A stretch of 33,200 nucleotides of DNA, taken from Salpingoeca rosetta (Eukaryota; Protista; Choanoflagellata). Below, piece after piece: positions 18,438 through 24,195 of this stretch; position 1 is the first letter of the stretch, and every line of letters starts with the position of its first letter. A program made the translations under genes and the position numbers. Under the pieces are notes generated by a model. It was not told the DNA's origin, made no database searches, and saw only the letters and a list, made by a program, of their open reading frames with translations. The DNA lies in NCBI GenBank assembly GCA_033442325.1, contig JAWQFM010000030.1, forward strand, positions 1 to 33,200. Direction: 5' to 3'.

Positions 18438-21400
18438 TCATGAGGAGGCGGAGCCGCCGTGCTCCTTGGCCAGGCGCAGAAGCTTAGCGGCCTTGCCGAC
18501 CTTGACGCCGGCATCCGTGAGCATGACGCGTGTGAGCCCACCGTCAGCCACCAATTCAGCCAAATCTTCGAGGGTGTCGATGCCATGGTCAAGCAGCGCT
18601 GATTCAACGTGCGGCAGCAGCGAGTGGCGGTCGAGCCATTGAATCAGCTCTGGTTCGAATGTGGTTGAGGACGAGGGCGATGGGGTGGCAGGTGGTGGCG
18701 TTGAATGGGCCGTGGCAGTGGAGATCGAGGAAGATGACTGCACGGCAGACAAGTTAGAGGGGTCGAGTGAGACACTCGTGCCAAGTGGAAGAGAGAAAGC
18801 GCACGCTTCCATATCTGCAGACATGCACACACACACACACACAAACACACACACACACACACGCACGCACATACGCGCACACACACACACACACACACAC
18901 ACAACCATACCTGCGTGGAACGACGTGCAGCTGCTGGCCCCTGAGCTGCTTGCTCCTCGCTCCTCGCGGAGACGACGACCTGGCGCACCTTCTCTGCAAT
19001 GTTGCGCAGCTGCAACGTGCGGTCCACACCGGCATCCATCGCAACCACGGCGTCAATGTCAAATAGCGACAGTACCACTTCACGGACGCTTTTGTGCTGC
19101 TGGGGTGGTGGCAGGTGCAGCACTTGCGAAAAGAACTGGTCCAGCGCTGACGTCGTGTTCTTGCTCACAACATCCGGCAACTTCGTTGCCAGCCGCTTCA
19201 GGCGGTCAAACGAGTCGTACTCGCTCACTTCCGCCCTGCTCATAACATGGTGGTTGCTGTCGTGCCAGCCACTGCCAATGAAGAGCGGAACGATGCGGCG
19301 GAGGTGGACCTTGTCTGGATGCTGGCGAGCAAGCTGCTGCAACTCCAGCATGGCCATCCACTCCAACAAGACGTTATCGCACGTGTCAGTGTGGCCGAGC
19401 GAGCGCATCTGATGGATGGCACCGACGGAGACGACGGGGCAGGCGACAGTACTGTTGTGCAGGGCTGTCATGCACGCACGCTTGAAGTTGACGCCTGTTT
19501 CGAGGTTGTTGGCGTCCACAAAGACCACCAAGCCGTGGTGTTCCAACCTTGGGTGAAGGGTCAACACCAGACCTCGGTTGCCGCGTTGCCTGTGACGTGG
19601 TGGTGAATATCGGGATGAGAAAGGAAGAGAGAGGGAAGGAAAGACACCCAGTTCGCACCGTACACACACACACACACACACATGTCCCACCTGTAGCTGA
19701 TGAAGGCGTCGTATTTGTCCTGCTGACCCATAACTGGCAAGAGTGGACCATATTTGGCGACCAGATCCTCTGGTGACAGCAGCTGTGAGCGGCCAACGCG
19801 AAGCGCTTTCTTGTTCGTGTGGTGGGTGTGCACGTCCTCGAAGAACAGCAGTCTCGTGTCATTGAATGGCAGCAGCAACGTGGCCTTGAGCTCGGGGTAG
19901 CGCTGCATGACAGCTGTAGTGATGGTGTCGTACAGCATGTGCAGCAGCGTGCGAGGACGTGCAGTCATGACCTTGATCTTGATGCCGCCAACAGCCGGCA
20001 CGAGCTGCATCTCGATCTCAGCAGCATCCATGAAGATCACGGCGTCTGTGCGGCTCAACATGGGCGGTTCCGTTGCACCGTGCTGCATGTGTGCCATCAC
20101 GCGTGCCAGAACCATCGGGAACAGGCCCTCTGGCAGGAAGGAGGCTTGCTGCGTGTCTGCAATCTTGGCGCTTACACCCCTCTTGAACTCCCTCAGGCTG
20201 AAGGCGACGTAGGCTGTCTTCTCCTCATATCCAACATACGGATTTGCTTGCTGTGCTGCTGCCGTGCTCAGAGTCACCGACGAGGACGCCTGTTCGTCCT
20301 CCAGCGTCATCGGCAGGATGGCTGGGACGAGGTACTGTTGGTGGTGTTGTTGTTGCTGTTGAGGACCGGGCAGCAGCACCATTGGCGCCGTGTACTGGAT
20401 ACACAACCCGTACTCCATCATGAGTTGGAGAAAGGGCTCAACCATGCCACCTTCCAAGCCCCTCCACAGCACATCAAGTAGACGGCGGTGCAGGATACCG
20501 CGGTCAACCAGGTCGTCCCACAGCTGCGCGCCAATGGCCCTTGCCGCACCATCACGCACGTCGTGATGCAGATCAAAGTTTCGGATGACGCGCGTCATCG
20601 TGTCCACCGCCCACTGCGGGCTCAGGATCACATAATCTTCCATGCCAGGCACGCTGTCGTAGTACAACACCATGGAGTACAGGTGCAGGAACTGCAGGCA
20701 GGCCCTCGTCTCCTCACGTGTGCGCAGCCCACACGTGCGTCCAATATCCACCACCTCATCAAAGGTGAGCAGCGGCCGTTTGTCGTCCTTGCTCAGTGCC
20801 ATCAGTTTGTCGTAGAGATGGAGGTATGGCACAGCCACCTCCTGGCTCACGTACTCCTGCGCTAAGGCTGTGGAGGAGATGGACTGGCGCAAGTCCTGAA
20901 TCATGGGGTCATTGATGGACTTGGTGTTGTCGACGGGCCAGAACCACAGACCATGCTTGTCGTTGTGGACGACGCCAGGGAAGGCCGGGTTGTGGCGCAG
21001 GCGGCTGTAGATGTCGCGTGATATCTGCTCATGCTGCTTCCTCTCGTTGATCTTGTCAGCGAAGGTGCCGACGATGAGGACGGGTGCGCCCTTGGCGTGG
21101 AGGTGGAGGGCGGAGAGCCAGTGCTCCATAAACTCCCACGATTCAGCCCGCTTGCTCTTGTCTTGGTGCAACAGGTCCTCCATTGAGAACACCAGCAGGT
21201 ACACCGCGTACCTGTTTGCGGGTGGGTGAAGATGGGGGTAAGGAGGGGAGGGTGAGCGGAAGTGGGGTTGTTGAGGGGAGCGGTGATCAGCACACACACA
21301 CACACACACACACACACACACACACACACACAATACACGCACGCAAGCACGCACACACACACACACACACACACACACACACACACACAAATGCATCCTA

Positions 21401-24195
21401 CTCACTTGGTGAGGAAGAAAGGGTGGAAGATGTAGAAGGTGGACTGACCGCCCAGGTCAAACACCTTGAACGTGACACGCGCTTTGCCCTCGCCCATGAC
21501 GGCGTCCACGTTGAATTCTTTGATCGCCTTCTCCATCTCCTCCGCAGACATGCCGGTCGTGGCGGTGGCGGTGTTGTTGTAATTGCCGGCAGCAGAATCA
21601 CTTTGGCTGGAAGGGTTTAGGGTGGCCTGCTTCGTGGGCGCAGATGCTGAGTCATGAGATGCCTTGGTGGGTTTGGGGACGGTCGGTGGTGGCTTCTTGG
21701 ATGATGGCCGTGGCTGTGTCTCCTTTGCATTCTGCAACTGTCTTTGCTTCAGTTTGGCAGCTGCTGCTTTCTCTGCCTTGTCGGCTTCCTGCTGCCGCTG
21801 TTGCTGATGGTGTTTGGTGATACGCCCCTTCAGGTCCGCCTTCGCCTTCATCATCGCCTGCTTCATCTGCAAATCCACGCCGGATTCCTGCGCCAGCGCC
21901 GTGCCGCAGAGACTGCGCATCAGCTCCGAGATCTCCGCATCCAGCTCCTGCAAGGTGGGAAAAGAAGTGTGTGTGTGTGTGTGTGTGTGTGTGTGTGTGT
22001 GTGTGTGTGTGTGTGTGTGTGTGTGTGTGTGTGTGTGTGTGTGTGTGTGTGTGTGTGTGTGTGTGTGTGTGTGTGTGTGGGTGGGTGGGTGTGTGAACGC
22101 TTGTGCGAGGGGATGATCGTGTCAACCACCACCTCTCTTCACACCCATGCGTCGCACACATCACATGCTCGCATCAGCTTCACTCACACACCTGCCAGTC
22201 GTGAACGTCCATGGACTCGACAACGACGGCGAGGTCGGTTGAGGTGGCGCCATGCGTGGAGTGCTCATGCTTGTTGAACATGTGACCCATGAGCGAGTGG
22301 AACGTGGAAGTCTTGCCGGCGCGCCCCTGACCAATGAAGATGAGTTTGGCCCTGCCCGCCATGGTCGCGTTGAAGCGCGCTATGACCTCCCGCATGCGCT
22401 GCTGGAGACGCTCCCTGCGCGCCTGCTCGGGCTGCTGCTGCTGGTGGCGGTGGTGATGGTTGTGTGAGACATCATGATTATGCTTGATACGAGACCACGG
22501 AGAGCGTGATGAAGGAATGGCATGGGTGACGTGATGCATTTGCTTGTGCGTTGCAAGCAAGCACCCTTCTGATCACTCACGTCTTGCGCTGCTTGTTCTT
22601 CTTGCTTCGGTCCGGCGGCAGGAGTGGGCGCAGGTGGCTCTTGTTTTGGCTGCTGCTGCTGTTGCTGTTGTTGCTGGGGTTTGCCGCCTGGTTTCAGCCC
22701 GTCGATGCTGGTGATGGCAGCGTGGCCGTTGGCTTGTGCCGCATCATAGGGCGTCTCTCCCTGCGTGTGTTGGAAAGGTAAAACGCATGAGTTGAGGAAG
22801 GAGGGAAGCAGGGGGAGGGGGAGGACACAGCACAAAGCAAGGAAGCAGTTGTGTCACGTCTTCAGAAACAGCCACACGACGCGAAGCACACCTTCTTGTT
22901 CTTGACGGAGGCATCTGCGCCCTTCTTGAGGAGTAGCTCCACGACGGCGGGCTGGTTGTGCCTGCAGGCAACGTGCAGCGGCGTGTCACCCTGTGGTTGG
23001 TGGGGGCAGCAAGGGGCATGGCACGTGTGGTGAGGATCTGTTGGAAACGAACACACGGCCGGTGCAACCATGAGCGAGCGCCGTCACATACAAGCACAAC
23101 ACACACAATGCACATACCTGTTCATTATGTTGGTTGACATCTGCATTGTCCTGTTCGATGAGGGACGTGACAGCTGGAGCGTCGCCATCCCTGCAGGCAG
23201 CAAACAGTTGCTCATGGTGTCGTCGTTTCTTCTCCTTGCGTGCTTCATCGAAGGCGGCGTTGCCCTCACGGTCATCACCCCTGTGATCTCACGCAAAATT
23301 AAACGCAAACATTGTGTGAGGAGAAGGGTCGAGAGATGGCAGGGAGCAAACGACGAGAGTGGAAGCACGCGTTGACTGACCAGTATGTGATGAGTTTGCG
23401 GTTGACGGGCAGCGCGGTACCAAAGGCACGGGCGGTGGCGGTGGAGTTCTTCTCGATGCTGAACGAGGACACGTGGTGGTAGCGTGTGGTTCGGAACAAG
23501 CAGCAATTGCGGTGTGTGGGTCAGGAGGGTTGGTGGTTAGGGTTGTGGAGAAATGCAAGCAAGCAGAGAGGAACACACAGTGTGGCGTGCACTCAAAGAG
23601 TGGCGATTAGTCACACAAATCCACAACAGGACACAGGCGTTCATGAGGCAGGCGCAACGTAATCGACGCACTCAAGCTGAGACAGCGTGCGGTTCTGGTC
23701 CAGTGCGGCACCCAGCGCCGCACCGCCAACCGGGGTGATGGAGTTGTTGGTCAAGCTGCAAGTGGCAAGAAATGCATGTTGAAAGAGCAGGGGAACGGGT
23801 GGGCAAGCAACACGTGTCAGTGTCATGGATGAAAGTGGGTTGCAGATGGATCACGTGCACGCGTACTCGCTCGCACATCAGGTCCTACGACATTGAAGGC
23901 ACAATTGCACATGCACAAGGGGCAACTGCGGTTGCACATAATGTAGCAGCACGCATGTCACAGCGCTTGATGAATTGGGGGGGGGGGATTGCTTGGCGCA
24001 ACAAGCACACGGCAGAGACGTCATGCATGGCTGGCTGGCTGTGTTTCAAGTTGAGCATGGGAAGCAGGTGCAATGGCAAAGACATATTGCCAAAATGGCC
24101 CTTCCACTCACCCGAGTGTTGTCATGGTTGTGTTGTGCTTCAACGTTTCCGCCAACGCTGCAGCGCCCGCGTCGCTGATGGAACTGTCGCCCAGG
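18438..24195 (-). CDS. ROCO protein with architecture LRR(RNI-like)-ankyrin-ROC GTPase-COR-TIR-SAM; at least 1325 aa, 5' end lost in a gap
   Basis: Eleven phase-compatible exons: 24195-24112, 23755-23672, 23458-23381, 23280-23118, 22990-22892, 22760-22581, 22440-22192, 21947-21406, 21211-19691, 19589-18911, 18737-18438. Motifs: LRR ISDAGAAALAETLKHNTTMTTL; ANK GDTPLHVAC; G1 GQGRAGKTS, G2 STHG, G3 FDLGGQ, G4 VGTFADK; COR LQFLHLYSMVLYY..ILSPQW; TIR YDAFISYR..VFVD..CDNVLLEW; SAM WLDRHSL..LLDHGIDTLEDL..GVKVGKAAKLL. Confidence 0.9.
21968..22079. repeat. Pure (TG)n microsatellite (~110 nt) in a ROCO intron
   Basis: Uninterrupted TG run. Confidence 0.95.

Follow-up and report, generated by a model that had tools for sequence, protein, structure and literature searches.

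Gene structure and domain organization of PTSG_11382

The 33,200-nucleotide stretch of the Salpingoeca rosetta genome analysed here (GenBank assembly GCA_033442325.1, contig JAWQFM010000030.1, positions 1 to 33,200; hereafter the window) forms the initial 33.2 kb of scaffold C30 and contains, on its minus strand from position 24195 to 18438, the gene PTSG_11382. As we show here, the gene encodes a Roco protein without a kinase, in which leucine-rich repeats (LRRs) and ankyrin repeats (ANK) precede the Roc GTPase and COR, while TIR and SAM domains follow them, giving the order (missing head and some LRRs)-LRR-ANK-Roc-COR-TIR-SAM. The gene as assembled comprises 11 exons with canonical GT...AG borders and 1325 codons, the sole stop being terminal (Table 1). 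The public version of the protein (XP_004987618.1; UniProt F2UT82), a hypothetical protein of 1301 amino acids, displays 99.9% identity with residues 24-1325 of this model. The only difference is one Gln, which corresponds to a 3-base alternative acceptor of exon 7 of the NAGNAG type, located within a CAG run; as the two models differ at this residue, forms with and without the extra Gln may both be produced. Introns in this region of the window are GT/CA-rich and a CA repeat is evident.

Table 1. Coordinates of PTSG_11382 and adjoining features in the window.
Feature	Position	Strand	Description
Exon 1 as assembled	24112..24195	-	84 bases, phase 2; one 28-aa ribonuclease inhibitor (RNI)-like LRR; AG acceptor, GTGAGT donor; weak LRR_6 match
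Exon 2	23672..23755	-	84 bases, phase 2; second 28-aa LRR
Exon 3	23381..23458	-	78 bases, phase 2; third LRR, degenerate
Exons 4-6	23280-23118, 22990-22892, 22760-22581	-	Two to three ankyrin repeats, then Gln/Pro-rich linker
Exon 7	22192..22440	-	Start of Roc, P-loop GQGRAGKT; Roc 28.2 bits on the exon piece
Exon 7 acceptor	22438-22443	-	Within CAG run
CA repeat	21967-22079
Exon 8	21406..21947	-	Insert of ~160 aa within Roc, then switch II DLGGQ
Exon 9	19691..21211	-	Remainder of Roc (GTFAD at the G4 position), COR-A, COR-B, first TIR strand KYDAFISYR
Exon 10	18911..19589	-	TIR domain; catalytic-type Glu codon GAG at 19363-19361
Exon 11	18438..18737	-	Ser/Thr/Pro-rich linker, SAM (~18474-18650), stop TGA 18440-18438
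Scaffolding gap, 100 N	24290..24389	.	Truncates the 5' end of the gene; ribosomal DNA (rDNA) beyond, outside the gene
Partial rDNA unit	24390-33200	-	Large subunit (LSU) 24746-26384; 5.8S 27560-27741; small subunit (SSU) 28409-30511
N gaps in rDNA unit	26361-26853, 29603-30283
515-aa open frame	16233-17780	+	About ten repeats of a GLIYGIP...VLIIDP.TNT.D-like motif
N gap before 515-aa frame	16082-16181

Domains were assigned by Pfam scoring of pieces of the public protein (residues 1-1199 and 1203-1301). Ank_2 scored 48.7 bits (cut-off 27.3) across residues 84-162, a segment in which the Pfam Ank model reached 41.1 bits, and 39.5 bits on exon 5 alone. Roc was matched in two separate stretches (61.9-66.1 bits; cut-off 27), followed by COR-A at residues 598-768 (63.2 bits, and 64.9 bits on exon 9; cut-off 35.3), a complete TIR_2 domain (35.4 bits; cut-off 28) and SAM_2 in the region encoded by exon 11 (23.5 bits; cut-off 20.5). 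No protein kinase family was among the matches, and the UniRef label 'non-specific serine/threonine protein kinase' is an artefact of naming that does not apply to PTSG_11382. Within residues 1-1199 there was also no NACHT or NB-ARC match at E<=0.05; PTSG_11382 is an analogue, not a member, of the nucleotide-binding LRR (NLR) receptors of the STAND (signal transduction ATPases with numerous domains) class. The preliminary description of this locus, which had proposed an intact spliced reading frame of at least 1325 codons and this order of domains with no kinase, is thus borne out, the former by the 11 open exons and the near identity to the public protein, and the latter by the Pfam scores, including those for TIR and SAM, the AlphaFold models and the fold searches described below.

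The protein contains the Roc motifs GQGRAGKT and DLGGQ, with COR directly after Roc, which identifies it as a Roco protein. Its G4 motif has the T-x-x-D form known from LRRK2. In a Ras-like fold the P-loop and DxGGQ are ~47 residues apart. The equivalent spacing is 210 residues in PTSG_11382 and 191-244 residues in 14 relatives, including one from Salpingoeca infusionum, and Roc thus carries an insert of ~160 residues. This segment, encoded by exon 8, is charged, Gln-rich and of low complexity, and its position is conserved in every family member examined. The insert is a family-wide feature, described for the first time here, that is unusual for a Ras-like fold.

Signs that the gene is transcribed are suggestive only. 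Sequencing runs in public datasets from five studies contain up to 0.54 of the 31-mers of the stretch, compared with an exon share of 0.66, which fits contigs derived from mRNA but is no proof of them. A search with the TIR exon for short protein fragments crossing its junctions returned only PTSG_01764, which consists of TIR and SAM alone, and, at 44% identity, a single Logan fragment. A literature search for the locus tags of PTSG_11382 and three sister genes found no mention of them.

The TIR and SAM domains

An AlphaFold (AF2) model of the TIR domain, built from 31 family sequences, had a mean predicted local distance difference test (pLDDT) score of 87.6. All 34 matches obtained with this model in Foldseek at E<=1e-3 were TIR domains; plant TIRs of the enzyme type (RUN1, L6, SNC1 and RPP1) ranked first, ahead of those of SARM1 and AbTir. 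The TIRs of plant NLRs were the best structural matches (E 2e-6; TM score 0.67-0.73 by target length), while the best solved relative by sequence was the TIR of SARM1 (E 4e-4), the alignment being confined to the first ~70 residues. Glu93 of the 31-sequence alignment is one of seven invariant positions; it corresponds to E1052 of PTSG_11382, within the motif LLEW, and occupies the same column as E1118 of F2UB80, the product of the sister gene PTSG_12359. The TIR domains of these two proteins are 87% identical. In a 2026 preprint the F2UB80 domain (residues 1034-1255, catalytic residue 1118) is reported as active in Escherichia coli, where it produced cyclic ADP-ribose (cADPR); the authors count S. 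rosetta as one of the non-animal species whose TIRs make cADPR, and state that mutation of the catalytic Glu abolished activity in every case tested (Table S4, 10.64898/2026.04.20.719644). Figure 3 of the same study covers an S. rosetta TIR, and its legend defines LRR, Roc and COR (10.64898/2026.04.20.719644). Thus, with a sister domain that is 87% identical, cADPR-producing and Glu-dependent, the view that the TIR of PTSG_11382 is an enzyme is well grounded by homology.

The SAM domain was modelled as a five-helix bundle (pLDDT 76). A Foldseek search with this model returned no significant match; in an exhaustive VIA-align search SAM domains made up most of the top 30 (Z 6-8, root-mean-square deviation ~2 A over 61-65 residues, spanning the entire domain), and included those of p73, EphA2/SHIP2, CASKIN2, SARM1 and tankyrase. 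At their C-termini some sister proteins, and also PTSG_01764, have CaaX-like tails (CCALM, CCLLM, VCMLI; P0167, P0168 and P0268 in the alignment). PTSG_11382 ends in GGSASS and is without such a tail.

PTSG_11382 belongs to a large family and is under purifying selection

Searching the genome with the TIR exon identified 46 matches, 33 of them near full length. The Roco-TIR family of S. rosetta comprises ~30 to 45 genes, and full-length TIR exons of this type number at least 33. Around 20 annotated sister proteins in NCBI and UniProt have the same set of Pfam domains in the same layout. The DNA of the seven closest paralogs is 88-93% identical to that of PTSG_11382. In comparisons with these seven, the ratio of non-synonymous to synonymous substitution rates (dN/dS) was 0.15-0.23 for the Roc/COR exon (exon 9) and 0.20-0.29 for the TIR exon, and stop codons were absent. 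Selection has therefore maintained both the Roc/COR and the TIR module after the genes were duplicated, a finding that is new here.

The youngest clade of the family, defined by TIR exons that are >=86% identical to that of PTSG_11382, comprises PTSG_11382 itself and loci at C4:76049, C36:42512, C29:886885, C23:1193635, C14:1676479, C26:20805 and C13:1705970. All eight lie 18-76 kb from the end of a scaffold. The zone within 80 kb of scaffold ends makes up 19.6% of the genome, and the binomial probability of finding 8/8 loci there is 2e-6; by comparison, five of the 25 older copies fall in this zone, which is no enrichment. This clustering is likewise reported for the first time here. Scaffold C36 begins with 56 CCCTAA repeats, and the copy on it is therefore ~40 kb from a real telomere and truly subtelomeric. 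The other scaffold ends checked had no telomere repeat, and some are formed by appended small scaffolds; thus a subtelomeric location of the clade as a whole is likely but not proven.

The 5' end of the gene

Upstream of exon 1 the sequence passes through a (CT)n tract into the gap of 100 N, and only three LRRs are thus left in PTSG_11382. Exon 1 as assembled, the LRR of which is 48% identical to the LRR_6 repeats of the public model P0001, is not the true first exon, and the annotated start Met is an artefact as it lies inside an LRR. As the sequence on the far side of the gap is rDNA, the assembly lacks the true N-terminus. The P-loop is at residue 242 in PTSG_11382, compared with 363-422 in complete close paralogs, from which it follows that ~100-160 residues have been lost; by comparison with those paralogs the missing part probably consists of the conserved head of the family (MSGGEKRAREEVEALLAQTK...) and two to four LRRs. 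The connection between gene and rDNA is a scaffolding join, since the older public scaffold of PTSG_11382 (12,566 bases) corresponds exactly to positions 11724-24289 of the window and GL832992.1, the older form of the C30 scaffold, has its apparent start at position 24390 (an offset of 24,389 bases). The lost 5' end was not found among the 29 N-terminal head exons of the genome. Three head exons with no TIR exon nearby were considered as candidates and rejected, as they belong to gap-free loci containing only head and LRRs. At these loci (C34:12453, C28:976051 and C27:1044789) the conserved head is followed by ~8-10 single-LRR exons, with nothing resembling ANK, Roc, COR or TIR in the following 6 kb; they may represent relatives that consist of LRRs alone, or may serve as a store of LRR exons.

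An exact copy of 2001 bases of the Roc-COR part of the gene (positions 19800-21800) is present at C30:79495-81495, ~58 kb away, where it is flanked by two N gaps within another member of the family. In all likelihood the copy is a small contig that is redundant. P0001, a public model of 968 amino acids on GL832992.1, was considered as an alternative model of PTSG_11382 and rejected, being a chimera across the gaps that surround this duplicated contig.

Relatives in other eukaryotes and similarity to known systems

With the Roc/COR exon as query, a full HMMER scan retrieved 1664 relatives. Among the best 150 of these many have a TIR after COR, and Roc-COR-TIR proteins were evident in Salpingoeca infusionum, Hartaetosiga balthica, Mylnosiga fluctuans, Guillardia theta and uncultured organisms. 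Published examples are a TPR-ROCO-TIR protein in the red alga Chondrus crispus (PMC11378527) and ROC-COR with TIR in the mollusc Aplysia (PMC9334734). For choanoflagellates, the survey by Richter et al. gives Ank, Arm and SH2 as the partners of TIR, with Roc-COR not among them, and the published immune inventory of choanoflagellates lists TLR-like proteins, SARM1, cGAS and STING but no Roco-TIR genes (PMC6040629). The proteins of Chondrus, Aplysia and Guillardia (L1JCD1) resemble PTSG_11382 in uniting Roc-COR and TIR, but have other sensor repeats and extra domains, and a terminal SAM is reported for none of them. On a metagenome contig (L024, 3061-6708) a Roc-COR-TIR open reading frame of 977 residues is followed, 40 bases later, by one of 224 residues with a faint SAM_2 match, and, on the basis of this pair, the combination of TIR and SAM after a Roco may exist outside S. 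rosetta. The preliminary description had regarded ROC-COR-TIR as mainly prokaryotic and the complete architecture as unrecognized among characterized proteins. The first view does not hold given the choanoflagellate, Guillardia, Chondrus and Aplysia proteins, and the claim to novelty is overstated, as PTSG_11382 (F2UT82) is public, ~20 sisters have the same layout and the TIR of one of these, F2UB80, has been assayed.

The closest known protein is F2UB80, which shares with PTSG_11382 the LRR-ANK-Roc-COR-TIR-SAM layout and the position of the catalytic Glu, but is encoded at a different locus (C14 rather than C30), has other LRR content and another N-terminus, and was assayed as an isolated TIR. 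SARM1, an ARM-SAM-SAM-TIR NAD+ hydrolase, similarly combines SAM with an enzyme-type TIR, and its SAM is among the fold matches described above; in PTSG_11382, however, a single SAM follows the TIR, Roc-COR is present, and both the ARM sensor and the tandem SAM ring are lacking. Plant TIR-NLRs (RPP1, ROQ1, RUN1 and L6) present the same combination of LRR sensor, NTPase switch and TIR enzyme, and the functional analogy to NLRs drawn previously is sensible. In contrast to PTSG_11382, these receptors have a STAND NB-ARC ATPase as the switch, an N-terminal TIR and no SAM. In LRRK2 and other Roco proteins ankyrin repeats and LRRs also precede Roc-COR, but PTSG_11382 has a TIR-SAM rather than a kinase-WD40 output, LRRs before ANK and the ~160-residue Roc insert. 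Finally, the LRR-ROCO proteins of brown algae, which are candidate immune receptors, form an expanded family in which each LRR has an exon of its own, always in phase 2, and for which exon shuffling has been proposed as the means of diversification (PMC11378527). The LRR exons of PTSG_11382 are likewise in phase 2; those of the algal genes, however, are 72 bases rather than 84, 84 and 78 bases long, and the algal proteins end after COR and lack ANK, TIR and SAM (PMC11378527).

Possible function of PTSG_11382

On balance we favour the view that PTSG_11382 is a GTPase-switched TIR enzyme, equipped with repeat sensors and SAM, whose role resembles that of an immune receptor; we consider this reading rather probable. 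In such a protein the LRR and ankyrin repeats would bind a ligand or hold the molecule closed, and Roc, through its nucleotide state, would act as the switch in concert with dimerization mediated by COR. Switching and SAM-SAM contacts could then gather the TIRs into composite active sites, as occurs through the SAMs of SARM1 and the oligomerization of plant TIR-NLRs, and the active TIRs would convert NAD+ into a cADPR signal and possibly deplete NAD+. The sensor, switch and effector scheme put forward in the preliminary description is thus reasonable, given the invariant Glu and the cADPR made by the sister TIR, while its other elements, oligomerization driven by SAM and an immune function, we infer by analogy. 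For the family an immune-receptor role is plausible; its size, the one-LRR-per-exon layout and the position of the young clade near scaffold ends would fit a fast-evolving role of this kind.

It should be emphasized, however, that several observations weigh against this interpretation. The N-terminus of the protein is missing, its three remaining repeats (residues 1-62) score 17.9 bits with LRR_6, below the cut-off of 23.4, compared with 35-104 bits in sister proteins, and COR-B (residues 824-920) also scores below its cut-off of 27, with 22.1 bits, or 23.1 bits on exon 9. The splice junctions derive from the sequence and the public gene model. The assay evidence concerns the isolated TIR of F2UB80 and no full-length member of the family, and the F2UB80 row of Table S4 is filled in for 'Active' and 'cADPR' only, the field for NAD+ depletion having no entry (10.64898/2026.04.20.719644); a role as a cell-killing NADase is therefore unsupported. 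There is, in addition, no link between the Roco-TIR family and any pathogen.

It could be argued that these proteins are GTPase-regulated cADPR synthases engaged in ordinary signalling rather than defence, for example in calcium signalling or in responding to the bacterial cues for rosette formation or mating. The product of the F2UB80 TIR, cADPR, is a classic second messenger, and its detection with no entry for NAD+ depletion accords with such a function, as do the CaaX tails of some sister copies, which suggest signalling at membranes, and the fact that Roco proteins of Dictyostelium and animals mostly serve signalling and trafficking (PMC11378527). A set of over 30 paralogs whose LRR cassettes are the size of an exon, with a young clade close to the ends of scaffolds, is, however, more typical of recognition families than of housekeeping signalling, and we regard the proposal as unlikely, if still a serious competitor.

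It is also conceivable that this particular copy is dead or partial, either a 5'-truncated fragment or a leftover from the assembly of a sister gene. Its 5' end meets a gap with rDNA on the far side, it occupied an unplaced 12.5-kb scaffold in the older assembly, no head exon can be assigned to it and the exact 2001-base duplicate of its Roc-COR part, located between gaps on the same scaffold, indicates that the assembly is unreliable here. In contrast, none of the 11 exons is interrupted and their splice sites are canonical, the dN/dS values of 0.15-0.29 and the lack of stops are those of a gene under constraint, and the runs from five studies contain about half of its 31-mers, approximately the exon share, which is suggestive only. 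Furthermore, the DNA differs by 7-11% from every other copy, and the gene is therefore a locus of its own; a dead or partial copy is accordingly improbable.

Many animal TIRs are adaptors. That the TIR of the full-length protein likewise mediates protein-protein contacts, in the manner of TLR/MyD88 signalling, and is no enzyme would accommodate the restriction of the F2UB80 assay to an isolated domain in E. coli, but is more doubtful still given that the catalytic Glu shows no variation among 31 family members, that the sister domain is active and activity was Glu-dependent in all cases (10.64898/2026.04.20.719644), and that choanoflagellates have yielded neither MyD88 nor IRAK partners (PMC6040629).

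The interpretation of PTSG_11382 as a GTPase-switched TIR enzyme can be taken further, to a family of true pathogen-sensing receptors in which control over a TIR cADPR synthase lies with a Roco GTPase in place of a STAND ATPase, and in which swapping of LRR exons within subtelomeric arrays generates new specificities. This extension is tentative, and on present evidence would be more likely wrong than right. Were it true, the family would be a third independent solution to coupling a sensor, a switch and a TIR, beside plant TIR-NLRs and bacterial systems. In a choanoflagellate, and thus in the sister group of animals, 30 to 45 GTPase-switched TIR enzymes would bear on how TIRs were wired before animals arose. 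The family would also offer a Roco protein that is tractable and whose enzymatic output is easy to measure. PTSG_11382 alone adds little; its value lies in being a further intact member on which purifying selection acts, and in having pointed to the clustering of the youngest clade at scaffold ends.

Sequences adjoining the gene

Beyond the gap upstream of PTSG_11382 the remainder of the window is occupied by a partial rDNA unit on the minus strand, with LSU, 5.8S and SSU segments and two N gaps of its own (Table 1). On the other side of the gene an open frame of 515 codons on the plus strand begins directly after a further N gap, and its repeated motif gives the predicted product a propeller-like look.

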